This document shows positions 6,217 to 46,190 of a stretch of 60,037 nucleotides of DNA, in pieces. A model generated the notes under the pieces. It saw only the letters and a list, made by a program, of their open reading frames with translations, had not been told where the DNA came from and searched no databases. Each line of letters opens with the position of its first letter. The stretch's first letter is position 1. Source of the stretch: Macrostomum lignano (lineage: Eukaryota); contig NIVC01002549.1 in assembly GCA_002269645.1 (NCBI GenBank), positions 1-60,037 of the forward strand. Direction: 5' to 3'. The translations under genes and the position numbers were made by a program.

Positions 6217-6930
<714 letters not shown>

Positions 6931-7122: not shown

Positions 7123-7175
<53 letters not shown>

Positions 7176-9464: not shown

Positions 9465-12400
9465 TACCCACTAAATCGTGCATCCTATGACTTTATAACT
9501 CCATTCTCAGCAGGAATATTCGCCGCGGCAGCCCTTCTAGCTGTCCTGACATTGCCGGTTGCCGGCTTCACAACGACAGCGGATCCCTTCTGCTCGTGCG
9601 TGCCGCTCACCACCAAGTACTTCTTCACCACCCCAACTCCAACCACTCCCACCACCACGGTCACTACAACGACGCCCACGACAACTTCAACTACGACGCC
9701 AACTACAACTACAACAACACGGCTGCCGACAACCACACCAGGTGAGTGCGGCACCGCTGATCATTCATGATCATTATTGTTGTATATTCTTGCAACTAAA
9801 TAAATTTTTATTACGAGTAATTTAGCGATTCGAAAAAAGCCCTGAAAAGTTTGCGTCAACGGTGTAGGAGGTACCTGTAGGAGCCGTGACGGGTGTCAAC
9901 TGAAGCATTCGAATGGAGCCCTATAAGTAAAGGTCTGGACAAAAAAAATCCATTACTTGATAGACTTTTTATCCCCTGGTAGCCCATGAGAGACCTGCAT
10001 AGGATGTCTCGACGTCTCTAATCTCCCGTTCTGACAAGTTATCGATCTCCTAAATCTCAAATTTTAAGGTTTAGATGCAGAAGGTTTTCATACTAATAGG
10101 CTAAAAATTCTAATTTAAAAAAATCTTCAGTCTGCGACTACGTGAACGGTCTGTCGCAGAAGTCTTACATCCCGGACAAATCCATCTCTGGTGGACGGCC
10201 GGGAGTCACCGGCAGCTTTCTTATTAATTTCAACGATCAGATGGAGTTTGACTTCATTGTCGATGGCTGTCGAACTACTGAAATTTTTGTGAACACTCTG
10301 TGCATGACTGGAAACGTGATGCGAGCAGTAGTGCAGTACATGCCGACCACCAGTAGCCGCTACGTCCCATTTGAGCCGTCCAGCTCCCTGTTTTCTGATG
10401 TCACTGGCGCCAGGCTGTGCTATGAGCTGAATACGAGGATGGCTCGGCTTGCCTTTTATCCAGTCGCACTGAAGTCCGGGCCCTGTCGGCCACCAACTAC
10501 CAGGTATTCCTCACCATCGACGGCTGCTTCACACCGGTTAATGACAGCTGCCAAACTACCTCCACAAGCACTACAACTTCTACTACCACTACCAGCACTA
10601 CTACGACCCCGACGACTACATCTACTACTACTACAACGACGCCGACAACACCCACTACAACTCCGACGACATCCACCACAACCACCAGCACAACACCGAC
10701 AACCACCACAACAACGACGCCTACCACTACGACTTGTAAGTTCAGTGTTAGTAAATCAGTTATCAAAAGTTAATGATTTATAACTGATACAGATATTAAT
10801 TTTAAGACATAACTTTCATTAGAACTCTTTTAGTCCCGGCCCCTTAAGAAAATAGCGCATCTCAATGCCTCTTTTCAACTACAGATTGCCCCAGTGTCGA
10901 TGGTATGCTGTACCCTTCGATGATCCCCGCTATCGACATTGCGACAGTCGGTAACAGCACTCGTCAAGTCTCAGGAGCGTTTACACTTCAGCCTAGAACG
11001 TCTGTCATTGTCGATATCTCGTCGAGAGGCTGTCGTCCCGCAACTCGGGTTCTAAGAGTAAGAAAAAGCAGCATTTCTGCCAACTGACACAATCATTGAC
11101 TATAATATCACACTAATCTAAATTTTAGGTTTGCATAGCTGGAAACGTTGCTCAAGCATTTGTTCTGGTGCGATTCAACACAGACGTGATTCCCTACCTG
11201 ATCCCTGACTCGGCTACGCTCACTGCAAAGGAGGAGAAATTCTGTGCATTGATGTAAACAGAGATGTCATCAGTGTTCAGGTAGAACCGCAGCTATTCAA
11301 GACGACAGCAAGTTCCTACTACTTCTTCTTATCGATCTATGGCTGCTTCAGCAACTTAAACTCGTCCTGTCTGACAACACCGACTGCCATTACTAGCAGC
11401 ACTACCAGCACATCAAGCACAACCAGCAGCACCAGCACTACTTCGACCACGACAACATCCACTTCTACGACGACGACACCGACAACGCCAACAACAACTC
11501 GGACAACCTCAACCACAACCAGCACAACACCGACAACCACCACTGTAACGACACCTACCACTACGACTTGTAAGAATTGCTGCACTAATATTTTCAATAT
11601 CAGTAAAAAATTAATCCTCACTTATTGCATGACTAAGCTGCATACAATATGCTCGAAAGAGAGCAGAAACGTCTAAAAATGAAAACTTTTAACAAATTTC
11701 GCTATATGAAAGTTTATCTTATTTTAGCTTTTCATTGACTTTTATGTTTTTGGCACATAACCATTTTAGACTGCCGCATTGTGAACGGCATGTCGGACTA
11801 CTCCTATATTCCGCTCACCGCCGTGAATCACGCGACGAATGATCCGCTTCGCGGCTGGCTGGTTCACCAAAATGACGTCATGCAAATTGACCTGGTACTT
11901 GGATCTTGTCGTGCCCCGATTCGAATCGAAACAGTGAGTTTGATATTTTACAAGCGATTCAACAAATTCGAATTCTCACGACTTTGGTTTAAAAATGATA
12001 TTTATTTAAGAAATTTCTTCACCTAACAATAACTCGTTTCAGATCTGTATCAGTGGCACTGTAAAACGGGCCAACATTTTGTACGGGGAAACATTCGATA
12101 AACCGTTCGTTCCCGTGCCGAGATCAGCATCCGTATCGAGCGATGTTGGAGATCTGTGCTACGACATTAAACTAGTTGCGGCCAAGATTGGAATTTTTCC
12201 ATTGGAGTTCAAGTCGTCGGCACCGAACAAAACCCAGTACCAGTTCTACCTCACGATCAACGCGTGCTTCTTGCCGCTTTCCGCAGTGTGTCTGACAACG
12301 CCAACAACAACTACAAGCACTACCACTACCCCAACAACACCAACGTCTACTAAAACCACATCCACCACATCAACGACTCCAACTACAACCAGCACGACAG

Positions 12401-15400
12401 CATCTACACAAACTACTTCAATATCGACATCAACTCCAACAACAGTTTCTACGACGACACCTGCGACAACTACAACTGGCACAACTTCTTCATCCACAAC
12501 GCAAACGACTGCCACACCGACCACGAGCACCACTGGAACAACCACTACGACAACTTCTACGACTCCTAAGCCAACAAGTAGGTTTTATACTGCTGAGCAT
12601 TTTTCATTCGAAGCCATGTGATTTTTATGGGTTTCAATTGTTTTAATTCGGGGCTCCGAACTACAGCAGTTCTATGAGGGTAGTTAAATCTCTTCACTAC
12701 CCTCATTTAGTCTCTGCTCTTAGTCTATCCAGCTGCACTAAATACTTTTAAGCCCTTTTTAGCACCCAACTTCTATGTAATCCCTTCTGAACCAAAAGGA
12801 TTGTTCCTCAAAATAACCAAAAGGTTAAAGAGGGATTACCAAAAGGTTATCCCTCTCTGCAAAACAGATAAATTTACAAAATAATCTTTAGGCTGAAGAT
12901 AACTACTGAGATAAGCATATAATGTGTTAATGTTAAAAATGATATATATGTATATTGGACCAGATGTACGTATAGATAAAGTATCTCATGGCGTGGACAG
13001 CTGAAGTAGAAGGATGTTACACTCGAAAATCATGTAAATTTCATAGGAAACCAGTTTTTTTCTGCAAAAATGCATTAGCAACATAAGAAGCTGTCACTAA
13101 TTTTAGCACTAAATCATAATATCTCATATTATGGATTTCCGAATTCGGAATTAAGCGAGCAGGGAGTGGTTTCGTTCAAGGAGAAAAATCCGTCTAGAAC
13201 AATACATTAGAAATACAAACAGGTGAAATTTTCTCCGTAACTTTGCTTGCCGACGAGTCCCCCCCTAGTAAGTATTTCATAAAACAATAGCTTGTTAATT
13301 TATGAGTGAGTGAACCCCAGGAAATGTCGACTTGTTTACTTGTCAGAAAGGGAGCTATTCGGCTTTTTTTAGAACTAAAAAGCGAACACCTCCTTATATC
13401 GCCAATGAATTTTGCAATGAAAATCGGCCCCCATTTCAACTTGTACGATTTGCAAAGAAACGCGTCATTTTACTTCGGTTGGCCATGTTCTACAATGAAT
13501 GGTTCATTGCAGATCTGTGGTATCAAAGCGCTCTAAAACAGTTTCTAAATTTAAAACAGATATAACTTCTGCTAAGTAGAAGTTCTGTTTTACACAGCAG
13601 AGTTAACAAATCAGTTTGAAGGATTTATGTTGCTACAGATAAAAACAGGGTCAACAATTTTCAATAGGACTTGAAATTCAGACTGGTAAACCTCTTCGGG
13701 AAAACCTCGCTGCGGGAAAATCTCGGCGGGGAAAACTCGGCAGGAAAGACTCGGTGGGAAAACCTCCCGTGGAAAAATTTTCCTGCCGGAAGGAAGAGAG
13801 GAGAGAGGAGAAAGAAGGTTAGAGAGCAGAGCGCTGGGTAGAGATGTATACATTGAGTGGGCCGGATTGCTAATTGTGAAGTTTTGAAGGACCCGAGGGC
13901 CGGATAGAGAGGCTTTGCCCACGAGCTGACGTTCTCCGACCCCTGATTTACAAAAATTCGATGTGACTCTATGTGACTGCAAGCAAAATCAAACCCATTG
14001 CATGGACATGGGAGGGGAGCAAAATTGGAATGTATCACCTCTAAGCTACACCTCGCAGGGAATTCTGCATCCTTTGTGTATCGTTTATAAAAGTTAACTT
14101 GCTTTGTTAACTTGCTTGTCAACAAGTTAATTGGAAATAAGGACCACAATACGAGAAGTAGAAGTCCTCTCAGACAATAAATTTGGCAGCATTACATTTA
14201 AGCGAGAAGGGAGAATGGGGCATTACTACACAGCACCTCAGAGGCCGTCAGGGCCACATATGAGCGGCGCGGCAAAATTCTAATACCAAGTCAGGCATCC
14301 CGCCACAGATGATCACAAATGGAGTTGAGAATGTGATGGAGAAAGCTTTACTGACCCAGAGAGTGAATTTCACGAATTCAACCAAGCCAATAAAAAAGTG
14401 AGCCACAAAGGCTACTCCAGTCAGGTACTCACAGCCAGCTAGCAGCATTACGAAAAACATCAATTCTTACAGAATGAAAAATCAATGACTAAAATTATTT
14501 ACTATAACTACGAGCTACTCTGATTTTTAAGTATTTCTCAATAACTTTCAAAACGGTACATTTAGACTCATAAAAGTCCAATGCTTACTTTTTTGCCTAA
14601 TTTTCAAGTAATTAGGAGTAATTAAAAACAAAGGTCTAAACGAAATATTGGAAACGTATGTACCTGTTTTATTGCAGTCTGCCCACTGATCAATGGACTG
14701 ACTAGCAGTACCTACATCCCGTCCTACTCTATCAGCGGAGTCTCGTCTGACCCCACATTTGGATACAGCATTTTAAGGTCCACCTCTGGTTTTATGGATA
14801 TCGATCTGTCTGCCGTGAAATGCCGACCAAATCCAGTCTACATTGAAAGGGTAGAGCTTTTTGAATAAAACTATTGTTAATAAACAATTATTAAGCAATT
14901 TCTTTAGAATTCCATTTTTCCATTAAAAAATTCAGATCTGTCTGTACGGAAACATCAAACAAGCTAACATTCACTTAAAAAGAAGCGTCACTGGAAATCT
15001 GGTCTTTTCTGAGCTATCTTTCACAACCACCGGCGACGCCATGGCCGACTCGCTTTGCTACTCGATCGGATTCAACATATCGGCAGTGAGAATTGCTCCT
15101 CAGTTGGTAAAGTCGTATGATTCGGCTGCGACAAACTTCCGGTTTTCCGTCACCATTGAGGGTTGCTTCGAACCACTGCCGAGCACTTGCACTGCGCCAA
15201 CGACTACGACGTCAACTACTACATCAACTACTACACCTAGAACTACCACAAGTGCTACGACATCGACTTCAACAACGACCACCACACCGACCAGTTCGAC
15301 GACTATAACTACTCCAACAACAACATTAACAACAACGACTACATCAACAACTCCAACAACAACGTCGACGACCACGACAACGACGCCGACCACAACGACA

Positions 15401-18400
15401 CCAACAAGTACGACTACAACATCCCCGAGTACAACCTGTGAGTTCATTTCTAGACAATTAAATTGTAAATCCATTTACAAAACTGTTGACTGTCTTTTCT
15501 ATCGATTCTGTATGGGCATTGGAATTTTATATTGCATAAATCTGGCGCTCAATTGCAGATTGCCCCAGTGTCGATGGTATGCTGTACCCTTCGATGATCC
15601 CCGCTATCGACATTGCGACATTCGGTAACAGCACTCGTCAAGTCTCAGGAGCGTTTACACTTCAGCCTAGAACGTCTGTCATTGTCGATATCTCGTCGAG
15701 AGGCTGTCGTCCCGCAACTCGGGTTCTAAGAGTAAGAAAAGCAGCATTTCTGCCAACTGACACAATCATTGACTATAATATCACACTAACCTAAATTTTA
15801 GGTTTGCATAGCTGGAAACGTTGCTCAAGCATTTGTTCTGGTGCGATTCAACACAGACGTGATTCCCTACCTGATCCCTGACTCGGTTACGCTCACTGCA
15901 AAGGAAGGAGAAATTCTGTGCATTGATGTAAACAGAGATGTCATCAGTGTTCAGGTAGAACCGCAGCTATTCAAGACGACAGCAAGTTCCTACTACTTCT
16001 TCTTATCGATCTATGGCTGCTTCAGCAACTTAAACTCGTCCTGCCTTACAACAACCACAACTACTACAACGACATCAACAACCACGCCAACAACAAGTAC
16101 AACAAGTTCGAAGACATCAACAACTCCTACAACAACCAGTACAACTACAACCACGCCTTCAACTACTTCAACGACAACCAGCACAACGAAAAGCACTACT
16201 CCGACGACGCCGACAACAACTTCTACTACAACAACTACACCTACGACCTGTAAGAATTAGTAGTAATAGAAATCTAACCTTTTCGTTTCATTTTATTGTT
16301 TTTTGTTATAATCATCATTTGTCTGTAAAAATATGATTTTTAGACTGTCCTGTGGTCGACGGAATGACAAGCGCGCAGTTTATACCAGATCAAGACATTT
16401 CTGGGGCATCTATTAATCGAGCAGGAGCATTTGTTGTTCCACAACTTAGTTCAATAATGGTGGATATCTCAGCTCGCGGATGTAGGGCGCCAATTCGAAT
16501 TTTTAGCGTCTGTCTCGGTGGAAATGTGCAAACGACTCTGATTTCAGTACAGAACAATCTGGATTCTAGGCTTGTGCTTTTCCCTGCATCCGTTACGGGT
16601 GGAAACGGGCTACTTTGTCTTCAAGTGAACAGAGACATCACCGGTTTGCAGCTGATGCCACAGACAATGACTCCTGGAACAGGATCAGATTTCACGTTTT
16701 ACATGAATATCTACGGCTGCTTCACTGCCTTAAATGCCAGCTGTCTCACTACTACGACTACAACAACCACCACCACAACAACGACACCCACGACGACGTC
16801 AACGACAACGACACCAACGACAACGTCAACCACAACTACACCAACAACATCGACATCGACTACTCCTACTACCACTACAACTCCAACGACGATGTCTACC
16901 ACAGTCGCACCAACAACCCCCACTTCAACAACTACATCAACCACTCCGACTTCGAGTACTACAAGCACGACTACAACGCCTACTACAACTAGTAGCACTA
17001 CTACTACACCGACGACTACTTCAACAACCACTACAACACCTACAACTACCAGCACAACTACAACTCCTACGACAACGTCAACGACAACAACGTCTACAAC
17101 TACTGTCAAGCCTACAATTTGTCCAGCACTCAATGGCCTTAGTGATAGAAAGTACATACCTGATTGGGCCATTACCGGCGCCACTTATGTAACTGGTCGA
17201 TACGAGATGCCAGTGAGTCCGAGACGAGATCTTATCATAGATTTGACAGCTGGAGGATGTAATCCTGTTCCTACATACCTAACGAGAGTTTGTGTGACAG
17301 GAAATGTAAGGCAGGTAACGGTGTCTACCCAGACGACTTATCCGACCGGTCGGTTCGATCTTGTCTTGGAATCCAATTTGGTATCTGTCTCGTCTTCGTT
17401 GACTCCTCTTTGCATAACTCTGGGAGCAAACGCGACAGGAATTGCAATCACGCCAGTCGCACTACTGAACAGCTCGTCGCTGGAAACGAATTATTTATTC
17501 TTCCTGAGCCTTGAGGGCTGTTTCGCGCCTCTGTCTACGGCCTGTCAAACTCAACCTGTAACGACTTCTACAACGTCGACTACTTCATCCACAACAACAA
17601 CTCCCACAACTACTAGCACAACGCCGACATCGACCACAACAGCAACTAGCACTACTACAACCACTCCGTCGACAACAACATCCTGTTTGGTGAACGGACT
17701 CAACGGCGTCTTGATTCCTAGTTCTTCTATCAATGCTCCTAGTTATAATCCGTTAACAGGATATAATGTACCCAGAGGCTCAGTGGAAGGCGTCTATGTG
17801 GACATTTCTGTATCCGGTTGCCGCACACCGATCCTAATTAATAGGGTATGTAACTTGTTCTTTTCTTGATATTTAAATAAAATAGCAATTTCAAATGCTA
17901 AAATTAGATGCGTTCCGTTTTAGATTTGTCTGTTCGGCGGTAATGTAAAACGAGCTGATCTTATCATCCGTCAAGGCTCCACCCTCTACTGGGACTTCTT
18001 CGAGCAGTCGCTGTACAATACAAGTGACACTGCTACACCGCTGTGCTACTACCCAATGCTTCCCATTTCCGAGCTGAGAATTGTTCCGAAAGAGTTTAAA
18101 AGCGCAGCCTCAGGCGATTCGTTGTATCAGTTTTTCCTTTCCATCGAGGCCTGTTTCACTCCTCTGCCAGTATCGTGTACTACGACGACTACCTCAACGA
18201 CAACTTCAACACCAACCACTTCGACGAGCACAACAACGACTGCGACTACACCGACGACAACATCAACAGCGACAACTACACCCACCACGTCGACATCAAC
18301 GACGAGCACGACGACGAGCACAACGACCACTGCTACTACAACTACGCCTTCATGTGCAGTTGATGGCTTGTCGGATGAGCGCTTTATTCCATCATTTGCA

Positions 18401-21400
18401 GTCAGTGGAGCCAATTACACTGCTTCAGGGTACATGATTCGAACTGGTGGTACCTACGCAATGACAGTGGACATCTCCGTGTTTGGCTGCCGCATGCCAA
18501 TTACTGTTGAGAGCGTGAGTATTGAGCAGGAATTTCGTTACAACGTGACACTTTGCTAATACATTTCAGACATACCACTAGACAATACATTGTGTACCAC
18601 ACAACGGTTTTTGCAGATTTGTCTACTAGGAAACATTCAGAGTTCCTACATCCTGTATCAAACTACATACGGAGGACCATTCAGTCCGAATCTTCCGTCT
18701 GCAAGCCAGTCAGCTACTGGGGTTTCCGATCCGTTGTGCTTCACTCCGCCTACAGGAATGATGCTCACTGGTGTGCGCATCTCACCGCAACAGTTGAAGA
18801 GCGCTTTCAGCTCCGACACGGCATTTCGAGCTTACATCACAATCAAGGCTTGCTTCACACCTTTGAATAATACCTGCTTGACAACTCCGACAACAACGAC
18901 CACTACAACAACTACAACACCCACAACAACCACAACAACTACACCGACAACGTCGACCACTACCACTACAACTACTCTGACAAGTACAAGTACTACAACA
19001 GTGCCCACAACAAGTAAATAAGATCGTTACATGATTCTTTTAAGTGCTCAATTGTTATTGAGAGCTGTATTCGAGAAATAGTGTATTAATAACTTAATAA
19101 ATAAGACATTTTCACGTTCATTACAGTTTGTCCCGTCGTTAATGGTTTATCGAGTCCTGTGTACTTGCCGCAATTTACGATCACTGGTGCGACGTTTGAC
19201 GGCGCTACTGGCTGGAACATTCCAGTTTCCAGCGGTGGATACATAGCGATTGACCTCACAGCTCGTGGATGCCGGGGAGCCTTGACTGTTTATCAGGTAT
19301 GTATAATAGGGTACAACGAAAGATGACGCAGCTTTTATTTTTAATCTTCTCTGGCTTAACAGTGAAAGTCTATTAAACCACAATTTTGTTATATTTTATT
19401 TTGCTTTTGCACTGTAGTGCCTTTGTTATGTAGGTAGCTTCAACACTAGAAAAATAAATAAGATTCTAGGAAAAGCGCAGGTCAGTTTTAAGTCACTACT
19501 AAACATTTTTGGTTCATCAAAACTGGCACGGCTTCCCTGATTCTCATTATTACAGGTTTGTCTAATTGGAGGTAATGTGAAGATGGCAAACGTAATATAT
19601 CGAAGAACATATTCCGACTATCCGGTTATCTTCGCCGACTCAATAAACTATGAAACTAGTAGCTCTCAACTGTGCTACAATTTGAACATCGACATGGTTG
19701 AGCTCCAAGTCAAGCCTACTGCTCTTCGAGCTCCTGCAACGAACTATCAGTTTTTCTTGACTATACGAGCTTGCTTTTTGCCGCTTAACGACACATGTCA
19801 AACAACACCAACAACCACAACGACTACAACCACGACAACCACAGCAACTACCACGCCTACCACAAGTACGTCAACAAGCACAACAAGTACACCAACAACA
19901 ACTTCAACAACCACAACGCCAACTACTCTACCAACGTCATCTACAACTACAACAACGCCAACATCGACAAGCACCTCTTCGACTTCCACTACAACAACTA
20001 CACCTACCACTACTACAACTACAACTACGCCCACCACGACTGTGACGACGACTCCAACAACTACAATAACAACCCCGACTACTACTACTTGTAAGTTAAA
20101 ACAACGTTTAAAAAGAAACTTTTTAGTTTTAGTTCTCGAGTTTCTTTGGAAACCCAGCTTACAAGATGCGATTAATCATTTGTGCAAACTGACTACTTGA
20201 TTTTCAGCATGCCTCGTTGATGCCTTCAGTCGCTCGGACTTGCTGCCATCATTCGCAGTCACTGGTGGCACATACAGAGAGCTTTTTGGATACATTCTTC
20301 CCCTCAAAGCCGCATTGAAAATCGATCTTACTGTCTTTGGCTGCCGACCCGCTGCTGTGATTTCAAGGGTAAAGTTTAGATGTTGTATTCCTGTTTTCGA
20401 CATGGATATGCTTACTCGCTTAGTAACTACGCTCGTATATAACATTAATCTAACTAATCGTCAACGATCGTGATTGCAGCTGTGCATCGCTGGAAACGTG
20501 TTCAATGCACAAATCTTGATCCGAGAGCCAACCAGCGACAAACTGGTACCCGACTTCAACACGCCAGGAAAGACTTCTTCAACTGGAGATCCTCTGTGCT
20601 ATGATCTTAATAGACTCACCTCTGAACTAATGATTGTTCCTCAAGCTACAAAGCCTGGCTACAACTCAACCGAGTACCAGTTCTTCGTGTCTCTCATGGC
20701 CTGCATCAATCCTCTTAACTCCACGTGTCTGACCACGCCGACCACAACGACCAGCACCAGCACTACCAGCACGACTACAACTACTACAACGCCGACCACG
20801 CCGACTACTGTTACAACAAGCACTACTACAACTACACCGACTACAACTACCACTACGACGACTCCAACGACCAGCACTACGACATCGACGACAACAAGAA
20901 CTACTCTGACCACAACACTGGAAACCACAACGTCTTGCGCTATTGACGGCTTCTACCAGTCCAACTTGATTCCTTCATTCGCTGTAACTGGTGGAGAATA
21001 CGACCCATTCTATGGCTACAGACTTCCTCTGAAGAACGGAAGCCTTGAGATTGATCTGACTGTAAACTCATGTCGGCCGCCAATAGTCGTTGATAGGGTA
21101 CGCGTTTGTATGTCATTTATGACGTGTCTTGAACTATATTTTCCTCACATGTTTCCATACACTGGAATGTCCGCTTATTCTTTCAGATTTGTCTGATTGG
21201 TAACGTGCGAGAAGCCAACTTGCTGTTTGCAAGATTAAGCACTGAAAAGTACTCGCCTGATTTGTCTGCTTCGAGCATCTCAGTTGACACTACGAGTCCG
21301 TGGTGCTACACAGTTCTCAACAAAGAGACTGTAGCTAAAATAGCAATTGTGCCTCTGCGACTCAAATCGTTCTCGACCGAAAGTATGTTCAATTTCTTTG

Positions 21401-24400
21401 TTAGAGTCGATGCCTGCTTCACGCCGCTAACAGGCGCCTGCCTCACGACTCCAACGACTACCACCACAACTACTACTCCAACGACAACTTCAACCACGAC
21501 TTCAACGACAACGAGTACGACGACTACAACACCCACAACGACGACTCCAACAACCAGCGCATCGACTAAATCTCCAACAACTTCGACCTCTACTCCAACT
21601 TCAAGCACATTGACAACATCAACAAGTTCTACAACTACAGCGACCACCACGTCGACTGCTACAACTACGCCAACTACCTCGACCACATCAACAACCACTA
21701 CTTCTACTACCCCTAAACCAACTTGTAAGCAACTTACACGAGTAAAGTCAAATTTTACTTCTTCGTTAGTTTGCTGAATCTAGTGTCATCTGAATCGCGG
21801 TAATTACTTTTAGTTTGTCCTGCTGTCGATGCGATCGCTGATCCATCGTTGCTGCCTTCCTGGGCCATCAGTGGAGCAACATTCTCTTCTGTCTTGGGCT
21901 ACACAATGTCTAGAGCACCCGGCGAAGGACTTTTCATCGATTTGACATCCAACAACTGCCGCAGACCAGAATACATCACACAGGTACAATTAGGCTCTGT
22001 AGCATTGTTATTTTATTTGTCAGTGAAAGCTTGTCAAGATTCAATCTCTAATCGAAATTTTCATGCATTTTAGGTTTGTCTTATCGGTGGCAATGTAAAG
22101 AAAGCTGACCTCATCTACCAGACATCGGCATCGGTGCCCTACCTGCCACTGGTTCAGTCCACAACTATTATTCAAGACGGTCCAGGACTGCTGTGCTACG
22201 ACCTGAACTTCAACGTGAGCTCTATCATCATCGCACCGAAGGAACTGAAGTCTTCTGCAGCCACCGGATCTAGCACTTACAACTTCTTCCTGTCGGTGTA
22301 TGGCTGCTTCATGCCGATTCCAGGATGCACTCCAACAACCAGCACAACGACCAGCACGACGACAAGCACTAGCACAACCACGTCAAGCACGACCACAAGT
22401 GCAGCTACAACCACCACGACCCCCACGACCACTACTACTGTTGGAACCACTTGTAAGTGAAGAAAAAGAATGACAAATTTAGCCGGCCGCTCGAACAGGC
22501 CTGTTTTGTGTTTCTCGCACTAATATTTCCCAAAGAAAAGTTGTTCTTTGGCTTCATTTGACTTCGCTGCTTATCATCCCTGAATTATCTGTGGTAATTA
22601 TGTGTAATACTCGTATTCTTTAAACTTTATTTTTAGTCTGTCCAATGGTTAATGCTCTGACGGACCCATTGCTGCTACCGATGGATTCCATCACAGGGGC
22701 CACCAGCTTTAGCGACGCTACTGGCTTCAATATTCGCACTGGAACGGATGGATATTTGACTGTGGATATTACTGTCAGAAACTGTCGTACTGCTATATAT
22801 GTTGATAGGGTAAGCTTTAAAAAGCTGGTCAAATTTTAGGTATATGATTGCCGTTTGAGAATAGAAATTAATGTCTCTTTCTTCAACAATTTCTAGTTGT
22901 GTCTCTCCGGAAACGTTAGAGAGGCTACGATTCGATACAAGCAGTTCTATGCGGCACCTTTCCAAAATCTTGCTAGCTTGGTATCCTCAGACACTGCGGC
23001 GGATCTGTGCTTTGACATCGGCTTTCCAGTAGCTCAGTTCATCATTTTGCCGCGCACGCTTAAGACAGCTTCAGCGACGAGCACAAATTTCCAGATGTAC
23101 CTCATCATCAACGGCTGCTTCACAAGAGTTCCAGACATTTGCTTGACTACGACAACATCTACTACTACTACTACTCCGACCACTACTTCAACAACCACCG
23201 CAACAACTTTGAAACTAGTAGCACTACCACAACACCGACGACTACTTCAACAACCACTACAACACCTACAACTACCAGCACAACTACAACTCCTACGACA
23301 ACGTCAACGACAACAACGTCTACAACTACTGTCAAGCCTACAATTTGTCCAGCACTCAATGGCCTTAGTGATAGAAAGTACATACCTGATTGGGCCATTA
23401 CCGGCGCCACTTATGTAACTGGTCGATACGAGATGCCAGTGAGTCCGAGACGAGATCTTATCATAGATTTGACAGCTGGCGGATGTAATCCTGTTCCTAC
23501 ATACCTAACGAGAGTTTGTGTGACAGGAAATGTAAGGCAGGTAACGGTGTCTACCCAGACGACTTATCCGACCGGTCGGTTCGATCTTGTCTTGGAATCC
23601 AATTTGGTATCTGTCTCGTCTTCGTTGACTCCTCTTTGCATAACTCTGGGAGCAAACGCGACAGGAATTGCAATCACGCCAGTCGCACTACTGAACAGCT
23701 CGTCGCTGGAAACGAATTATTTATTCTTCCTGAGCCTTGAGGGCTGTTTCGCGCCTCTGTCTACGGCCTGTCAAACTCAACCTGTAACGACTTCTACAAC
23801 GTCGACTACTTCATCCACAACAACAACTCCCACAACTACTAGCACAACGCCGACATCGACCACAACAGCAACTAGCACTACTACAACCACTCCGTCGACA
23901 ACAACATCCTGTTTGGTGAACGGACTCAACGGCGTCTTGATTCCTAGTTCTTCTATCAATGCTCCTAGTTATAATCCGTTAACAGGATATAATGTACCCA
24001 GAGGCTCAGTGGAAGGCGTCTATGTGGACATTTCTGTATCCGGTTGCCGCACACCGATCCTAATTAATAGGGTATGTAACTTGTTCTTTTCTTGATATTT
24101 AAATAAAATAGCAATTTCAAATGCTAAAATTAGATGCGTTCCGTTTTAGATTTGTCTGTTCGGCGGTAATGTAAAACGAGCTGATCTTATCATCCGTCAA
24201 GGCTCCACCCTCTACTGGGACTTCTTCGAGCAGTCGCTGTACAATACAAGTGACACTGCTACACCGCTGTGCTACTACCCAATGCTTCCCATTTCCGAGC
24301 TGAGAATTGTTCCGAAAGAGTTTAAAAGCGCAGCCTCAGGCGATTCGTTGTATCAGTTTTTCCTTTCCATCGAGGCCTGTTTCACTCCTCTGCCAGTATC

Positions 24401-27400
24401 GTGTACTACGACGACTACCTCAACGACAACTTCAACACCAACCACTTCGACGAGCACAACAACGACTGCGACTACACCGACGACAACATCAACAGCGACA
24501 ACTACACCCACCACGTCGACATCAACGACGAGCACGACGACGAGCACAACGACCACTGCTACTACAACTACGCCTTCATGTGCAGTTGATGGCTTGTCGG
24601 ATGAGCGCTTTATTCCATCATTTGCAGTCAGTGGAGCCAATTACACTGCTTCAGGGTACATGATTCGAACTGGTGGTACCTACGCAATGACAGTGGACAT
24701 CTCCGTGTTTGGCTGCCGCATGCCAATTACTGTTGAGAGCGTGAGTATTGAGCAGGAATTTCGTTACAACGTGACACTTTGCTAATACATTTCAGACATA
24801 CCACTAGACAATACACATTGTGTACCACACAACGGTTTTGCAGATTTGTCTACTAGGAAACATTCAGAGTTCCTACATCCTGTATCAAACTACATACGGA
24901 GGACCATTCAGTCCGAATCTTCCGTCTGCAAGCCAGTCAGCTACTGGGGTTTCCGATCCGTTGTGCTTCACTCCGCCTACAGGAATGATGCTCACTGGTG
25001 TGCGCATCTCACCGCAACAGTTGAAGAGCGCTTTCAGCTCCGACACGGCATTTCGAGCTTACATCACAATCAAGGCTTGCTTCACACCTTTGAATAATAC
25101 CTGCTTGACAACTCCGACAACAACGACCACTACAACAACTACAACACCCACAACAACCACAACAACTACACCGACAACGTCGACCACTACCACTACAACT
25201 ACTCTGACAAGTACAAGTACTACAACAGTGCCCACAACAAGTAAATAAGATCGTTACATGATTCTTTTAAGTGCTCAATTGTTATTGAGAGCTGTATTCG
25301 AGAAATAGTGTATTAATAACTTAATAAATAAGACATTTTCACGTTCATTACAGTTTGTCCCGTCGTTAATGGTTTATCGAGTCCTGTGTACTTGCCGCAA
25401 TTTACGATCACTGGTGCGACGTTTGACGGCGCTACTGGCTGGAACATTCCAGTTTCCAGCGGTGGATACATAGCGATTGACCTCACAGCTCGTGGATGCC
25501 GGGGAGCCTTGACTGTTTATCAGGTATGTATAATAGGGTACAACGAAAGATGACGCAGCTTTTATTTTTAATCTTCTCTGGCTTAACAGTGAAGTCTATT
25601 AAACCACAATTTTGTTATATTTTATTTTGCTTTTGCACTGTAGTGCCTTTGTTATGTAGGTAGCTTCAACACTAGAAAAATAAATAAGATTCTAGGAAAA
25701 GCGCAGGTCAGTTTTAAGTCACTACTAAACATTTTTGGTTCATCAAAACTGGCACGGCTTCCCTGATTCTCATTATTACAGGTTTGTCTAATTGGAGGTA
25801 ATGTGAAGATGGCAAACGTAATATATCGAAGAACATATTCCGACTATCCGGTTATCTTCGCCGACTCAATAAACTATGAAACTAGTAGCTCTCAACTGTG
25901 CTACAATTTGAACATCGACATGGTTGAGCTCCAAGTCAAGCCTACTGCTCTTCGAGCTCCTGCAACGAACTATCAGTTTTTCTTGACTATACGAGCTTGC
26001 TTTTTGCCGCTTAACGACACATGTCAAACAACACCAACAACCACAACGACTACAACCACGACAACCACAGCAACTACCACGCCTACCACAAGTACGTCAA
26101 CAAGCACAACAAGTACACCAACAACAACTTCAACAACCACAACGCCAACTACTCTACCAACGTCATCTACAACTACAACAACGCCAACATCGACAAGCAT
26201 CTCTTCGACTTCCACTACAACAACTACACCTACCACTACTACAACTACAACTACGCCCACCACGACTGTGACGACGACTCCAACAACTACAATGACAACC
26301 CCGACTACTACTACTTGTAAGTTAAAACAACGTTTAAAAAGAAACTTTTTAGTTTTAGTTCTCGAGTTTCTTTGGAAACCCGTCTTACAAGATGCGATTA
26401 ATCATTTGTGCAAACTGACTACTTGATTTTCAGCATGCCTCGTTGATGCCTTCAGTCGCTCGGACTTGCTGCCATCATTCGCAGTCACTGGTGGCACATA
26501 CAGAGAGCTTTTTGGATACATTCTTCCCCTCAAAGCCGCATTGAAAATCGATCTTACTGTCTTTGGCTGCCGACCCGCTGCTGTGATTTCAAGGGTAAAG
26601 TTTAGATGTTGTATTCCTGTTTTCGACATGGATATGCTTACTCGCTTAGTAACTACGCTCGTATATAACATTAATCTAACTAATCGTCAACGATCGTGAT
26701 TGCAGCTGTGCATCGCTGGAAACGTGTTCAATGCACAAATCTTGATCCGAGAGCCAACCAGCGACAAACTGGTACCCGACTTCAACACGCCAGGAAAGAC
26801 TTCTTCAACTGGAGATCCTCTGTGCTATGATCTTAATAGACTCACCTCTGAACTAATGATTGTTCCTCAAGCTACAAAGCCTGGCTACAACTCAACCGAG
26901 TACCAGTTCTTCGTGTCTCTCATGGCCTGCATCAATCCTCTTAACTCCACGTGTCTGACCACGCCGACCACAACGACCAGCACCAGCACTACCAGCACGA
27001 CTACAACTACTACAACGCCGACCACGCCGACTACTGTTACAACAAGCACTACTACAACTACACCGACTACAACTACCACTACGACGACTCCAACGACCAG
27101 CACTACGACATCGACGACAACAAGAACTACTCTGACCACAACACTGGAAACCACAACGTCTTGCGCTATTGACGGCTTCTACCAGTCCAACTTGATTCCT
27201 TCATTCGCTGTAACTGGTGGAGAATACGACCCATTCTATGGCTACAGACTTCCTCTGAAGAACGGAAGCCTTGAGATTGATCTGACTGTAAACTCATGTC
27301 GGCCGCCAATAGTCGTTGATAGGGTACGCGTTTGTATGTCATTTATGACGTGTCTTGAACTATATTTTCCTCACATGTTTCCATACACTGGAATGTCCGC

Positions 27401-30400
27401 TTATTCTTTCAGATTTGTCTGATTGGTAACGTGCGAGAAGCCAACTTGCTGTTTGCAAGATTAAGCACTGAAAAGTACTCGCCTGATTTGTCTGCTTCGA
27501 GCATCTCAGTTGACACTACGAGTCCGTGGTGCTACACAGTTCTCAACAAAGAGACTGTAGCTAAAATAGCAATTGTGCCTCTGCGACTCAAATCGTTCTC
27601 GACCGAAAGTATGTTCAATTTCTTTGTTAGAGTCGATGCCTGCTTCACGCCGCTAACAGGCGCCTGCCTCACGACTCCAACGACTACCACCACAACTACT
27701 ACTCCAACGACAACTTCAACCACGACTTCAACGACAACGAGTACGACGACTACAACACCCACAACGACGACTCCAACAACCAGCGCATCGACTAAATCTC
27801 CAACAACTTCGACCTCTACTCCAACTTCAAGCACATTGACAACATCAACAAGTTCTACAACTACAGCGACCACCACGTCGACTGCTACAACTACGCCAAC
27901 TACCTCGACCACATCAACAACCACTACTTCTACTACCCCTAAACCAACTTGTAAGCAACTTACACGAGTAAAGTCAAATTTTACTTCTTCGTTAGTTTGC
28001 TGAATCTAGTGTCATCTGAATCGCGGTAATTACTTTTAGTTTGTCCTGCTGTCGATGCGATCGCTGATCCATCGTTGCTGCCTTCCTGGGCCATCAGTGG
28101 AGCAACATTCTCTTCTGTCTTGGGCTACACAATGTCTAGAGCACCCGGCGAAGGACTTTTCATCGATTTGACATCCAACAACTGCCGCAGACCAGAATAC
28201 ATCACACAGGTACAATTAGGCTCTGTAGCATTGTTATTTTATTTGTCAGTGAAAGCTTGTCAAGATTCAATCTCTAATCGAAATTTTCATGCATTTTAGG
28301 TTTGTCTTATCGGTGGCAATGTAAAGAAAGCTGACCTCATCTACCAGACATCGGCATCGGTGCCCTACCTGCCACTGGTTCAGTCCACAACTATTATTCA
28401 AGACGGTCCAGGACTGCTGTGCTACGACCTGAACTTCAACGTGAGCTCTATCATCATCGCACCGAAGGAACTGAAGTCTTCTGCAGCCACCGGATCTAGC
28501 ACTTACAACTTCTTCCTGTCGGTGTATGGCTGCTTCATGCCGATTCCAGGATGCACTCCAACAACCAGCACAACGACCAGCACGACGACAAGCACTAGCA
28601 CAACCACGTCAAGCACGACCACAAGTGCAGCTACAACCACCACGACCCCCACGACCACTACTACTGTTGGAACCACTTGTAAGTGAAGAAAAAGAATGAC
28701 AAATTTAGCCGGCCGCTCGAACAGGCCTGTTTTGTGTTTCTCGCACTAATATTTCCCAAAGAAAAGTTGTTCTTTGGCTTCATTTGACTTCGCTGCTTAT
28801 CATCCCTGAATTATCTGTGGTAATTATGTGTAATACTCGTATTCTTTAAACTTTATTTTTAGTCTGTCCAATGGTTAATGCTCTGACGGACCCATTGCTG
28901 CTACCGATGGATTCCATCACAGGGGCCACCAGCTTTAGCGACGCTACTGGCTTCAATATTCGCACTGGAACGGATGGATATTTGACTGTGGATATTACTG
29001 TCAGAAACTGTCGTACTGCTATATATGTTGATAGGGTAAGCTTTAAAAAGCTGGTCAAATTTTAGGTATATGATTGCCGTTTGAGAATAGAAATTAATGT
29101 CTCTTTCTTCAACAATTTCTAGTTGTGTCTCTCCGGAAACGTTAGAGAGGCTACGATTCGATACAAGCAGTTCTATGCGGCACCTTTCCAAAATCTTGCT
29201 AGCTTGGTATCCTCAGACACTGCGGCGGATCTGTGCTTTGACATCGGCTTTCCAGTAGCTCAGTTCATCATTTTGCCGCGCACGCTTAAGACAGCTTCAG
29301 CGACGAGCACAAATTTCCAGATGTACCTCATCATCAACGGCTGCTTCACAAGAGTTCCAGACATTTGCTTGACTACGACAACATCTACTACTACTACTAC
29401 TCCGACCACTACTTCAACAACCACCGCAACAACTTTGAAAACTAGTAGCACTACACAACACCGACGACTACTTCAACAACCACTACAACACCTACAACTA
29501 CCAGCACAACTACAACTCCTACGACAACGTCAACGACAACAACGTCTACAACTACTGTCAAGCCTACAATTTGTCCAGCACTCAATGGCCTTAGTGATAG
29601 AAAGTACATACCTGATTGGGCCATTACCGGCGCCACTTATGTAACTGGTCGATACGAGATGCCAGTGAGTCCGAGACGAGATCTTATCATAGATTTGACA
29701 GCTGGCGGATGTAATCCTGTTCCTACATACCTAACGAGAGTTTGTGTGACAGGAAATGTAAGGCAGGTAACGGTGTCTACCCAGACGACTTATCCGACCG
29801 GTCGGTTCGATCTTGTCTTGGAATCCAATTTGGTATCTGTCTCGTCTTCGTTGACTCCTCTTTGCATAACTCTGGGAGCAAACGCGACAGGAATTGCAAT
29901 CACGCCAGTCGCACTACTGAACAGCTCGTCGCTGGAAACGAATTATTTATTCTTCCTGAGCCTTGAGGGCTGTTTCGCGCCTCTGTCTACGGCCTGTCAA
30001 ACTCAACCTGTAACGACTTCTACAACGACGACTTCTACAACGTCGACTACTACATCTACAACAACGACTCCTACGACTTCTACAACCTCTACAACAACTA
30101 CTACTACTCCAACTACAAGCACCACAACAACAACGACTACTTCCACCACTACTACAACTCCGACTACAACTACGACTGTTGCGCCCACAACGACGTCTTG
30201 CATCTGTCCGTCCAACTACCAGCCTGTGTTTAAGAACGTCAAGACCGTGCCGTTCTCGTTCCGCTTTTCAAATTTGCAGTGGTTCGATGACTATGCAGAC
30301 CCGAACAGTTGGCGCTACAAGCAGCTGGCTAACTACGCCTTCGAGACCATTATGAAATCATCCAGGTCAACTTCGCTTAATGGTGAACTGCAAAATGCAG

Positions 30401-31009
30401 TAAACTTACAGTTTAAGTCGGGAAGTGTTGTTATCAGTGGAAACCTTGTGGTTCGAGACACGCTGACAAACACGGCCGATGCTATTATTAAACTTCTTTC
30501 TGAAAGTCTTAAAGCGACGGATCTGGGCGGTGTCATTGTCGATAACGTTGGATCTTCTGGTAAGTAGCGGCTTAAATATTAACCTAGAAATTTATTTTTT
30601 GTAACAATTTTTCTGTCACGACACCTCAGCTGTTACGACCCTTGCCGGTACGAGCTCTTCTGTTGCAGCCATCGAAACAACAGCACAGGCAGCATCCACA
30701 ACGGGAAGTGTCATGGCTGGCACAACAGCAACCAGAGTCACTGCAACTCCGTCTCAGGATTACACTGTCCTTATTATTCTGGTGGCGGTTATTGGTGGAC
30801 TTTTCCTCTTTGTGCTCATCATTTTTGTCTCCGTAAGCCTTATTGATTGATATTAAAAGAAATGAAGTTAATAAGTTTATAGTTATTCTGAAGATTTGTA
30901 ATGATTCACCAATGCTCCACTGCACAGGTCTACATCGTGCACATCAGGTGGCGGAAACGTGAACCGAATCTTCACACGCCGTATAGGACTGAGGAGCCGT
31001 ACACGGCAG
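9465..31009 (+). CDS. Giant type-I transmembrane mucin-like protein (~5,100 aa): signal peptide, 23 Cys-rich discoidin-like modules alternating with Thr/Ser/Pro linkers, SEA domain, TM, cytoplasmic tail
   Basis: GT-AG exons built by hand: 9465(or 9511)-9741, 10131-10735, 10885-11057, 11129-11569, 11770-11933, 12043-12577, 14678-14850, 14936-15437, 15559-15731, 15802-16249, 16344-17845, 17924-18514, 18617-19013, 19127-19296, 19556-20090, 20208-20368, 20480-21097, 21187-21724, 21814-21983, 22074-22452, 22637-22809, 22897-24071, 24150-24740, 24844-25240, 25354-25523, 25782-26316, 26434-26594, 26706-27323, 27413-27950, 28040-28209, 28300-28678, 28863-29035, 29123-30559, 30630-30832, 30928-31009. 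Intron phases are consistent. The signal core is GIFAAAALLAVLTLPVAG. Four 1-nt frameshifts occur (~10480, ~11231, ~23212, ~29454). The start codon and last exon(s) are unresolved. Confidence 0.85.
10131..29996 (+). other. Array of 23 ~135-142-aa six-cysteine extracellular modules, divergent discoidin / F5-8 type C (galactose-binding-like) fold suspected
   Basis: Consensus C-xx-[VIL]-[ND]-G-[LM]..[YFL]IP..[IV][ST]G...[VI]D[LI][TS]..xCR.P..[IV]..[VI]CL.GNV...LC[YF]...I.I.P..LK...[FY].FFL.I.[GA]CF.PL...C. The two ends echo FA58C motifs (C..LGM..G.IPD.QITAS and RI.P....LRLELYGC). The fold is inferred. Confidence 0.55.
13692..13782. repeat. Degenerate ~16-17-bp GGGAAAA repeats inside the 2.1-kb mucin intron (probable MITE remnant)
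   Basis: cgggaaaacctcgctgcgggaaaatctcggcggggaaaactcggcaggaaagactcggtgggaaaacctcccgtggaaaa. Confidence 0.55.
16988..30023 (+). repeat. Intragenic tandem duplication, 6,226-bp unit (8 modules plus introns), ~2.1 copies
   Basis: Matching ORFs are offset by 6226 (17290/23516/29742, 18056/24282, 22897/29123). I saw only a handful of substitutions and indels, introns included. Confidence 0.95.
30199..30559 (+). other. SEA domain of the mucin, with the autoproteolysis motif F-K-S-G^S-V-V-I
   Basis: CICPSNYQPVFKNVKTVPFSFRFSNLQWFDDYADPNSWRYKQLA...VNLQFKSGSVVISGNLVV...; the GSVV glycine codon is at 30421. Confidence 0.85.
30630..31009 (+). other. Juxtamembrane Ser/Thr stalk, transmembrane helix and start of the cytoplasmic tail of the mucin (2 exons)
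   Basis: Exon 30630-30832 ends ...DYTVLIILVAVIGGLFLFVLIIFVS. Exon 30928-31009 reads VYIVHIRWRKREPNLHTPYRTEEPYTA, a basic stop-transfer segment. Confidence 0.8.
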
Positions 31010-46189: not shown

Positions 46190-46190
46190 G

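Follow-up and report, generated by a model that had tools for sequence, protein, structure and literature searches.

Gene structure of the locus

The analyzed stretch of DNA, hereafter the window, comprises 60,037 nucleotides of the flatworm Macrostomum lignano (assembly GCA_002269645.1, contig NIVC01002549.1, forward strand) and harbors a real 35-exon gene for a membrane-anchored mucin of about 5,100 residues. When stop-to-stop frames were joined through frame-consistent GT-AG junctions, 35 exons emerged on the + strand (9459/9465-31047), and after four single-base patches the resulting 15.4 kb frame translates into 5,133 amino acids with no internal stop codon. The introns measure 70-389 nt in 33 cases and 2,100 nt in one; their phase is 1 between modules and 0 inside modules, and the junction across the long intron (PKPT-I-CPLINGL) is also found in the predicted protein P0003. 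The splice donors are mainly GTAAG/GTGAG, a type published for M. lignano cis-splicing (PMC8629364). Our literature search turned up no paper on this gene, nor any data on its expression, localization or glycosylation.

A module profile searched against the six-frame translation gave matches on the + strand only (10133-29997), corresponding to 23 full modules; the E-values run from 1e-12 (half modules) to 1e-44 (whole modules). An earlier note on this DNA had proposed a giant protein of ~5,100 aa, a single-pass membrane mucin type whose 23 modules sit on Thr-rich spacers and are followed by a SEA-TM anchor; our gene model agrees with this length and places all of these elements on the + strand. 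The linkage of modules to SEA, likewise proposed there, does not even need splicing, since one open frame (29449-30564) takes in module 23 together with its spacer and SEA. As for the gene end, placed at 31009 in the note, the simplest reading frame runs on to the stop codon 31045-31047. Comparison with another assembly of the locus revealed 20 synonymous and 17 non-synonymous differences and substitution rates of 0.6% in exons versus 1.15% in introns; the 20:17 ratio and the lower exonic rate point to purifying selection on the gene. Its features are as follows (position in the window, strand, description).

9465..31047, +, whole gene model: 35 exons, 34 GT-AG introns, ~5,133 aa
9465..9741, +, exon 1: signal-like stretch, PFCSCVPLTTKYFF motif, first Thr-rich spacer
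9516-9566, +, hydrophobic signal-like stretch IFAAAALLAVLTLPVAG, in exon 1
9585-9626, +, PFCSCVPLTTKYFF motif, in exon 1, common to the paralogue N-terminus
10133..10551, +, module 1: profile match, without internal intron
10482, +, frame break 1, inside module 1
10887..11370, +, module 2: profile match, phase-0 intron at 11058-11128
11231, +, frame break 2, inside module 2
11772..12291, +, module 3: profile match, junctions agree with predicted protein P0003
12578..14677, +, the only long intron, 2,100 nt, separating spacer 3 from module 4, module-free
14680..15190, +, module 4: profile match
15561..16044, +, module 5: 98% copy of module 2
16346..16744, +, module 6: profile match, intronless
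16987..30033, +, tandemly duplicated 6,226-bp unit: 16987-23212, 23213-29439, partial 29440-30033
17120..17545, +, module 7 (type A): profile match, intronless, taken for the structure model
17684..18178, +, module 8 (type B): profile match
18353..18877, +, module 9 (type C): profile match, junction agrees with PAA49141.1 / P0005
19129..19798, +, module 10 (type D): profile match
20210..20728, +, module 11 (type E): profile match
20936..21441, +, module 12 (type F): profile match
21816..22328, +, module 13 (type G): profile match
22639..23142, +, module 14 (type H): profile match
23207..23214, +, frame break 3: a run of AAA, against AAAA at the following unit junction
23346..29368, +, modules 15-22, the second A-H set: profile matches
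23346-23771 and 23910-24404, +, modules 15 and 16 of this set: profile matches
24579-25104 and 25356-26024, +, modules 17 and 18 of this set: profile matches
26436-26954 and 27162-27667, +, modules 19 and 20 of this set: profile matches
28042-28554 and 28865-29368, +, modules 21 and 22 of this set: profile matches
29450..29457, +, frame break 4: reads ACTACACA, against ACTACCACA at the preceding unit junction
29572..29997, +, module 23 (type A, third copy): shares its exon and open frame with SEA
30196..30558, +, SEA domain: Pfam PF01390, E=1.7e-8, 35.0 bits (cut-off 26.4)
30421..30435, +, G-S-V-V-I, candidate autoproteolysis site in the turn between model strands 2 and 3
30630..30760, +, Ser/Thr/Ala-rich juxtamembrane stalk, from the sequence
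30761..30945, +, TM helix YTVLIILVAVIGGLFLFVLIIFVS/VYIVHI, interrupted by the intron 30833-30927, alignable to the P0022 paralogue TM
30946..31047, +, cytoplasmic tail RWRKREPNLHTPYRTEEPYTAGWVSLSYCVNCL (33 residues, basic, Tyr-containing) and stop codon

Sequence and predicted fold of the modules and their spacers

The modules are 133-142 aa long, possess six invariant Cys residues and share 24-42% identity between types (about 32%). Fourteen types had been counted before; this number holds as 13 distinct types plus the near-copy module 5. Our alignments yield a family pattern (C..[DN]G[ML]....[IL]P...I, [IV]D[LIV], V..V.[LV].GN[VI], AC[FY] and a terminal C) to which a ~140-aa unit conforms in M. 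lignano, a chiton and metagenome eukaryotes. Four Cys residues of the Macrostomum modules lie beyond the Cys positions that are common to the non-flatworm homologues in the alignment. No Pfam family matched the module, F5_F8_type_C was absent at E<=10 across the 13 modules, and a PDB sequence search with the module gave no match; the earlier view that it is unmatched by any characterized protein is thereby sustained. Comparison of the module profile with a bona fide FA58C sequence by hhalign returned a probability of about 1.2%, and hence Pfam, PDB and hhalign did not tie the module by its sequence to any family of lectins or discoidins. The N-terminal segment C..DGM....IPD..I and the core IDL ... 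V..V.V.GN resemble the FA58C pattern.

The AlphaFold2 model of module 7 has a pLDDT of 93.9 and a pTM of 0.88. Its best Foldseek matches in the PDB are the muskelin discoidin domain, IFT25/HSPC034, the C domains of factors V/VIII and neuropilin b1, with lactadherin C2 and CBM32/29 as further matches (E 6e-6 to 1e-3, probability 1.00, and modest TM-scores of 0.5-0.65). On the basis of this model, we confidently predict that the disulfide-rich module adopts a discoidin / galactose-binding-domain-like beta-sandwich. With no sequence link at hand and modest TM-scores, it is only the general habits of this fold that speak for carbohydrate binding. The label lectin-like, which had been attached to the modules, consequently applies at the level of the fold only (discoidin / F5-8C / CBM32).

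The 24 spacers measure 42-125 aa each, in place of the ~25-90 aa assumed before, and total 1,668 residues, of which 68.6% are Thr, 14% Ser and 8.8% Pro (about 91% T/S/P). Their Thr codons are mixed ACN triplets and not a microsatellite. In length and composition, they correspond to what is expected for dense O-glycosylation in SEA-type transmembrane mucins, a modification that we predict for them.

N-terminus, SEA domain and membrane anchor

No in-frame ATG was found in exon 1 in either of two assemblies. The sequence TTTCAG/TAC at 9459-9465 (the slash marks the junction) matches the acceptor motif [T/C]TNCAG of spliced-leader (SL) trans-splicing in M. lignano, whose SL ends in ATG (PMC8629364). 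It is thus plausible that the AUG is donated by the spliced leader at the acceptor directly upstream of 9465.

The SEA domain scores 32.8 bits against PF01390 on the raw ORF as well, and its structural model (pLDDT 80.4) shows the element order beta-alpha-beta-beta-alpha-beta; the top seven Foldseek matches are all SEA domains (MUC16, TMPRSS6, 2e7v, 1ivz; E 6e-6 to 2e-4). The segment FKSG-SVVI occupies SEA residues 73-80, between the strands 65-73 and 79-87. G-S-V is invariant in all three M. lignano family members, and a paralogue reads G-S-V-K at this position. From this motif we infer that the SEA domain may cleave itself at G-S-V-V-I. The C-terminal 228 aa retrieved no homologue at E<=1e-3 and no SEA sequence match in the PDB, so that none of the named vertebrate MUC genes qualified as an orthologue. 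Within the cytoplasmic tail, position 31009 is a possible weak alternative donor.

Frame breaks and the tandem duplication

Four 1-bp frame breaks are present in the gene (10482, 11231, 23214 and 29454). The two 5' breaks read in frame in the other assembly, whose own breaks are private to it, and this indicates consensus errors. Two of the four lie outside homopolymers and are not simple homopolymer slips, so that some probability has to be granted to a broken allele.

The nine modules 15-23 are owed to the 6,226-bp tandem duplication, the breakpoints of which fall within Thr-rich spacers. Its units are 99.8% identical, and 7 substitutions and 4 indel events separate the two full ones. With units this similar, the module copy number may vary or be affected by the assembly; the scaffold of the independent assembly ends within the repeat, and the A-H copy number rests on one assembly.

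Relatives of the module

In an exhaustive search, the module profile matched only 21 proteins among 1.84 billion protein representatives, including M. lignano paralogues, a chiton "mucin-2-like" protein and a few metagenome proteins, some of them mucin-like; at least two of the 21, P0016 and P0019, look spurious, being repetitive proteins. The paralogues A0A1I8HA14 (annotated as 'Membrane-associated protein', a 1,617 aa model) and A0A1I8IX78 (945 aa) and the chiton protein XP_064614628 are all automatic, unreviewed predictions. Both paralogues carry the same module family, share the PFCSCVPLTTKYFF start and end, like the gene in the window, in SEA-like, TM and tail segments. The 13 module types recur in a paralogue in the same order at 44-54% identity; its SEA-TM region is 45-53% identical to that of our gene, whereas the A-H duplication is absent from its model. 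The homologue search that had been suggested for this locus has thus uncovered the same modules-SEA-TM plan within M. lignano, and the module itself beyond it.

In the chiton Liolophura sinensis, XP_064614628 has seven modules that alternate with T/P-rich linkers and possess the terminal Cys residues only; neither SEA nor TM was detected in it. In metagenome proteins, the module stands alongside TIL/VWC, and one contig has an exon with a TPGTTTTA repeat. The occurrence of the module beside mucin-type linkers in the chiton and in metagenome eukaryotes suggests an overlooked mucin-associated domain.

Interpretation of the encoded protein

We consider it fairly probable, judging from sequence features and structural models, that the gene encodes a type I transmembrane mucin-like glycoprotein of the apical glycocalyx that would present ordered lectin-type modules and use its SEA domain as a cleavable mechanical fuse. 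Densely O-glycosylated spacers would form stiff bottle-brush rods, and on an exposed epithelium, either epidermis or gut, the ectodomain could project several hundred nanometers beyond the apical membrane. Through its ordered series of differing modules, the protein may recognize, in a multivalent and lectin-type manner, the glycans of mucus, microbes, food or a secreted adhesive. Self-cleavage of SEA between G and S in the ER would leave two chains that are held together non-covalently, so that the giant ectodomain could be shed under tensile load and the membrane be spared, as in vertebrate SEA mucins. Each module with its spacer would make up a symmetric phase 1-1 cassette, and the array would grow through unequal crossing-over within spacers, the 6.2-kb A-H duplication being the latest event.

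The same membrane mucin could carry its modules as structural knots and not as lectins: protease-resistant, disulfide-locked spacers or homotypic cross-linking points, comparable to CysD, that organize or stiffen the glycocalyx without binding any foreign ligand. The four additional Cys residues of the Macrostomum modules would fit such a role, as would the lack of a recognizable sugar-binding signature and of lectin-family matches in the modules, and discoidin-fold proteins such as IFT25 and muskelin serve protein-protein contacts. Yet 13 types have stayed distinct and in order since the paralogues split, which is more than a generic spacer needs, and the nearest folds include many ligand binders (FV/FVIII C2, neuropilin b1, CBM32); we regard this reading as rather unlikely. 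Less likely still is that the module represents a hitherto unrecognized, mucin-dedicated branch of the discoidin fold, a spiralian counterpart of CysD, whose 13 ordered types bind O-glycans and thereby create a self-cross-linking mesh on a SEA joint. If true, the bound O-glycans would be those of neighboring mucins or of secreted glue or mucus, the SEA joint would be releasable by force, and such a coat in Macrostomum could be the missing link between the secreted adhesive and the microvilli.

This last idea touches on the duo-gland adhesive organ, for which the published model, as far as the portion of the source available to us goes, needs a link between secreted Mlig-ap1 and the anchor-cell microvilli and names no microvillar receptor (PMC8621496). 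An anchor-cell protein on the microvillar surface, bound by the cohesive glue protein Mlig-ap1 or by the glycosylated Mlig-ap2, would suit this gap, given many lectin-fold modules on a long tether and a force-sensitive SEA domain whose shedding would aid release. However, a general role as a mucin is suggested by the paralogues and by the relatives from the chiton and the metagenomes, and the adhesive-organ studies, in those parts of their full text that our search returned, make no reference to any SEA-domain protein or discoidin; a dedicated adhesive function hence appears very improbable. That this copy of the gene is in decay or was wrongly assembled, with real frame breaks, no full-length protein from this allele and an inflated count of 23 modules, strikes us as quite unlikely. 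The four frame breaks, two of them not simple homopolymer slips, the missing in-frame ATG, the 99.8% identity of the units and the independent scaffold that stops inside the repeat favor it, and M. lignano is described as a hidden polyploid with redundant copies (PMC10468722). Against it, there is not one substitution-derived stop codon in 5,133 codons, the synonymous to non-synonymous ratio implies constraint, and where one assembly breaks, the other stays in frame. At two unit junctions, moreover, each copy is intact where the other breaks, and the 7-substitution pattern is common to units 2 and 3, which argues that the units are not one sequence written twice.

Membrane mucins have been studied almost wholly in vertebrates. 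On the favored reading of a recognition-type membrane mucin, a flatworm uses the same SEA-TM anchor for a cell-surface mucin of the half-micrometer class, and its answer to the spacer-and-bead problem is another module, for which no family entry exists and which sequence databases hardly contain. In addition, the locus clearly exemplifies modular 1-1 exon cassettes that expand through unequal exchange in low-complexity spacers. As RNAi, in situ hybridization and transgenesis are established in M. lignano, both the ligands of the beads and the SEA fuse can be tested directly in vivo.

Comparison with known mucins and discoidin-type proteins

Folded domains interleaved with mucin spacers are familiar from MUC16 (SEA modules and PTS), from the CysD domains of MUC5AC/5B/2 and from the chitin-binding domains of insect peritrophin mucins. 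There is a close likeness with MUC16 (CA125), a giant single-pass mucin with repeated folded modules, O-glycosylated spacers (predicted in our case), a membrane-adjacent SEA domain and a short Tyr-containing tail; MUC16 SEA structures are also the best matches of our SEA model. Outside SEA, no sequence homology to MUC16 was detected, and its beads are near-identical SEA domains, whereas those of the M. lignano protein are 13 diverged discoidin-fold types above a single SEA. MUC1, MUC3, MUC12, MUC13, MUC17 and the cnidarian 'mucin1-like' proteins share the order of signal peptide (a signal-like stretch here), PTS, SEA with a G/SVVV-type motif (GSVVI in the beta2-beta3 turn here), TM and tail. 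These proteins have unbroken PTS arrays, and MUC3/12/13/17 an EGF domain beside SEA; in the window, the PTS is cut by globular modules into 24 short spacers, and EGF is absent.

In MUC2/MUC5AC/MUC5B and the peritrophin mucins, as in the window, small Cys-containing globular domains alternate with spacers, but these proteins are secreted, polymerize via VWD/CK or bind chitin via CBM14, and have beads of another fold. Pfam searches of the N-terminus, modules and C-terminus gave no match to VWD, C8, TIL, CK (cystine knot) or CBM14, and a gel-forming mucin was rejected because VWD-C8-TIL and the C-terminal cystine knot are absent. Discoidin, F5-8 type C and CBM32 domains (e.g., Clostridium CBM32) share the beta-sandwich of the module and Cys residues at both ends; they lack its four extra Cys residues, and a profile match is absent.

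The architecture had been put forward as one without known parallel. This remains correct for the module, which has no characterized match; the plan itself is preceded by the beads of MUC16, CysD and peritrophin mucins and by the signal peptide-PTS-SEA-TM 'mucin1-like' proteins reported outside vertebrates (PMC9080433). Nor is the system undescribed, as had been suggested, since paralogues of the same plan are deposited in UniProt (A0A1I8HA14, A0A1I8IX78) and the module stands between linkers in the chiton mucin-2-like protein. Collectively, these precedents and relatives identify the M. lignano protein as an unusual version of a protein class that is already known, built with a discoidin-fold module that has no family entry.

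Results

Across ~9.4-31.1 kb, the plus strand is C-rich (GC skew -0.1 to -0.3), and its open frames consist of Thr-rich runs alternating with Cys-containing segments. We listed the frame-compatible GT...AG pairs for each adjacent frame pair; nearly every junction offered a single strong pair (GTAAGT/GTGAGT donor, T-rich ...YAG acceptor) that restored the same local peptide, '...R|[VIL]C.GNV' at intra-module and '...TTT-x-C..[VI][DN]G' at inter-module junctions. The donors agree with the M. lignano consensus GT[G/A]AG (PMC8629364); GC-AG donors at 'TTTTCK' exon ends were dropped, as the DNA has T|GTAAGT phase-1 donors there. The resulting model comprises 35 exons, 33 introns of 70-389 nt plus one of 2,100 nt, and a 15.4-kb coding sequence translating into 5,133 residues. 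All inter-module introns are in phase 1; the intra-module introns are without exception in phase 0, at one shared profile position (57-59); module and spacer therefore form a symmetric 1-1 cassette.

The predicted protein starts with a hydrophobic signal-like stretch followed by a PFCSCVPLTTKYFF motif. Exon 1 contains no in-frame ATG, either in the window or in a second, independent assembly of the locus (GCA_002269645.1 scaffold NIVC01003964.1); in both assemblies the ATG at 9487 misses the frame by one base, and that at 9430 reads into a stop. The sequence TTTCAG|TAC at 9459-9465 matches the trans-splice acceptor motif [T/C]TNCAG published for M. lignano, whose spliced leader terminates in ATG (PMC8629364). 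An AUG donated by the spliced leader would yield a protein beginning with MYPLNRASYDFITPFSAGIFAAAALLAVLTLPVAG. An earlier note had placed the gene at 9465-31009; its start coincides with this acceptor, but its end falls short, as the frame stops at codon 31045-31047. No AATAAA occurs within ~700 nt of the stop codon. Two arrays lie 3' of the gene, one of 30 bp x 11 (31969-32307, 99% identical) and one of 21 bp x 27 (33501-34069).

When the whole window, translated in six frames, was searched with the module profile, matches were confined to the plus strand at 10133-29997 and comprised exactly 23 complete units, which bears out the 23-module array proposed previously. The modules have 133-142 residues each, and the 24 spacers measure 42-125 residues, somewhat longer than the ~25-90 residues first estimated; their Thr-rich nature was correctly recognized (pooled Thr 68.6%, Ser 14%, Pro 8.8%). 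All four ACN codons are used in the spacers, so that they do not represent a simple microsatellite. The last spacer is followed by a SEA domain, a 44-residue Ser/Thr/Ala stalk, a transmembrane (TM) helix and a 33-residue tail that starts with RWRKRE and contains three tyrosines. A single uninterrupted open frame (29449-30564) contains module 23, the spacer that belongs to it and the SEA domain, and the connection of the beads to the anchor, also part of the earlier proposal, therefore holds at the DNA level independently of splice prediction. The only splice-dependent C-terminal parts are those behind a 70-nt intron (before the stalk-TM exon) and a 95-nt intron (before the tail).

Pfam searches with the raw ORFs, each module type and both protein termini detected nothing besides the SEA domain, which scores over the Pfam threshold. 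Its structural model (pLDDT 80) has the element order beta-alpha-beta-beta-alpha-beta, and each of the seven structures that match it best is a SEA domain, the sources being MUC16, TMPRSS6, a membrane protease of the mouse and the murine homologue of MUC16. A phmmer search of the PDB with this segment gave chance matches only, and the SEA-TM-tail segment had no match in a word-indexed protein search. The sequence FKSG-SVVI is placed in the turn that joins strands 2 and 3, the position at which MUC1-type SEA domains undergo self-cleavage, and G-S-V is invariant in three M. lignano family members.

The earlier note's count of 14 module types is correct: 13 types are distinct, and module 5 is a variant that copies module 2 at 98%. 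Six cysteines are invariant across the 13 types, whose pairwise identities are 24-42% (mean 32%). None has a Pfam match even at E<=10, and PDB sequence profile searches with the 13-module alignment and with a 23-sequence alignment including non-flatworm homologues returned nothing meaningful. From the 13-sequence alignment, AlphaFold2 produced a confident all-beta model (pLDDT 93.9, pTM 0.88). The top ranks of a Foldseek search against the PDB (E 6e-6 to 1e-3, probability 1.00, TM 0.5-0.65, ~13% identity) were the muskelin discoidin domain, IFT25/HSPC034, factor V/VIII C domains, neuropilin b1, lactadherin C2 and bacterial CBM32/CBM29, a ranking that places the predicted module structure in the galactose-binding-domain-like/discoidin fold class. 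Membership in the F5/8 type C family by sequence was rejected; a comparison by hhalign with the true F5/8 type C sequence of the metagenome protein P0026 gave a probability of 1%. The label "lectin-like" that the modules had received is fair with respect to their predicted fold, lectin activity itself being putative.

Relatives of the module are rare. Among 1.84 billion cluster representatives, an exhaustive search with the profile retrieved only 21 proteins, and at least two of these matches (P0016, P0019), to repetitive proteins, look spurious; the word-indexed protein search gave no match with the 13-module alignment and only six short metagenome proteins with the 23-sequence alignment. Several profile matches are fragments of the window locus labelled Macrostomum lignano, and such fragments, including PAA49141.1 (BOX15_Mlig023086g3) and A0A1I8FZS0, identify the source organism and match four junctions of our model. 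The paralogue A0A1I8HA14 follows the same plan as the window gene (signal peptide, PFCSCVPLTTKYFF, modules, spacers, SEA, TM, tail), with 45-53% identity in the SEA-TM region; a second paralogue of this plan, A0A1I8IX78, carries four modules and, behind them, SEA-like and TM segments. Module types are 44-54% identical to their paralogue counterparts, whose order is conserved, and ~32% identical to other types; the types therefore predate the gene duplication and have stayed distinct.

Outside the flatworm, a chiton 'mucin-2-like' protein contains seven modules separated by T/P-rich linkers. The remaining relatives are metagenome proteins, some of which pair the module with TIL, VWC or true F5/8C domains. 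P0026 (4,511 aa, JGI metagenome), P0010, P0013, P0014 and P0017 are large secreted-type proteins with VWC/TIL domains; in this group, a further ~130-aa unit is repeated with T-rich linkers in between, the C-terminus has three or four copies of the module that lack the extra cysteines, and P0026 carries a genuine F5/8 type C domain. On a metagenome contig of an AT-rich eukaryote (ENA ERZ25069853 ctg28616l, plus strand 658-11331), at least five modules are encoded, mostly one per exon, and one exon has ~12 TPGTTTTA repeats followed by a module. Judged from its sequence, this looks like an independent gene built of beads and mucin spacers.

Between 16987 and 30033, the gene contains a tandem duplication.

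Tandem units of the mucin gene
16987-23212, plus strand: unit 1 (6,226 bp), module types A-H
23213-29439, plus strand: unit 2, module types A-H
29440-30033, plus strand: unit 3, partial, type A only

The two full units differ by seven substitutions and four indel events, and two variants are common to units 2 and 3 relative to unit 1; the units are therefore separate copies, as opposed to a single sequence that was entered two times. Their breakpoints lie in Thr-rich spacers, the pattern expected under unequal exchange.

The flanks of the mucin gene contain the following features.

Other features of the window
802-2191: 48-bp satellite, in the repeat-dense upstream flank
2501-3481 and 3680-4210: two arrays of one 22-bp unit in opposite orientation, foldback-like
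4469-5422, minus strand: GC-rich open frame of 318 codons between repeat arrays
6217-6930: perfect (ATCT)178 microsatellite
37397-47250, minus strand: Ty3/gypsy-type LTR retrotransposon
45369-46172, minus strand: gag-like frame, open
42125-45124, minus strand: RT-RNaseH frame, open
39800-42121, minus strand: integrase frame, open
38668-38967/46690-46989 and 37397-37696/46199-46498: direct repeats flanking the retrotransposon, 99% identical
55042-55500 and 57904-58182, plus strand: regions with the exons of a UBFD1-like gene
55529-57152: 47-bp satellite, ~30 copies, between the UBFD1-like exons
57471-57931: 21-bp array, after the 47-bp satellite

The direct repeats are 99% identical, so the retrotransposon is probably young. 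The UBFD1-like gene has a ubiquitin domain (E=9e-13) in one exon; the C-terminal PH-like domain of UBFD1 (E=4e-36) is encoded in another. The frame at 4469-5422 has no Pfam match and may be part of another mobile element.

Discussion

Our gene model needs a single added base at four sites (10482, 11231, 23214 and 29454) to remain in frame, and one has to ask whether the window represents a broken allele or an array inflated through assembly. The breaks at 23214 and 29454 are situated at the two junctions of the large tandem duplication, and in each case the counterpart at the other unit junction is intact. Scaffold NIVC01003964.1, 98.4% identical over window 9204-19431, is in frame at 10482 and 11231; it has, in turn, about nine exon deletions of 1-2 bp of its own, at sites where the window is complete. 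The model contains no substitution-derived stop in 5,133 codons; the two assemblies differ by 20 synonymous and 17 non-synonymous changes, and diverge by 0.6% in exons and 1.15% in introns. From this sequence record, we attribute the frame breaks to errors in the consensus or to lesions of very recent origin, not to an old pseudogene, and we regard a broken allele or an inflated array as distinctly improbable. The copy number of the A-H unit comes solely from the window assembly, because the independent scaffold terminates within this repeat. That older assembly annotates the locus as at least two separate genes (products of 964 aa and 290 aa); given this split, its private deletions and its end in the A-H repeat, the public gene models are fragmented.

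Sequence analysis and modelling show how this gene is organized into cassettes, how its product is built and folded, and how the module types are conserved. As to function, the protein is probably a glycocalyx mucin with multivalent discoidin-fold beads and a cleavable SEA domain. By analogy with established mucin biology, the spacers would be O-glycosylated and extended, and the ectodomain would contribute to an apical glycocalyx with a depth of several hundred nanometres; the ordered set of different discoidin-fold beads could provide multivalent recognition, and the SEA domain might be cleaved and serve as a force-sensitive joint. That the beads are structural or cross-linking elements and not lectins is a less likely explanation. 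A role on the surface of the anchor cells, as binding partner of the duo-gland adhesive, is in our judgement highly improbable; the published adhesion model (PMC8621496) requires a link of this kind.

We found no published description of this gene, either under its locus tag or in the literature on Macrostomum mucins, SEA domains or discoidins. The earlier note had considered the architecture as undescribed, which is true only in part. Folded beads between mucin spacers are known from MUC16, CysD-containing gel-forming mucins and peritrophin mucins, and the window protein has this interleaving of beads and spacers in common with them. Cnidarians, too, are reported to have proteins of the PTS-SEA-TM type (PMC9080433), and the same mucin-SEA-TM order is found in the window protein. 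What is new is that the bead belongs to a rare family without annotation and with a predicted discoidin fold, that one SEA-anchored chain carries 13 ordered types, and that this module family, as far as sequence similarity indicates, recurs in mucin-type proteins of other invertebrates.
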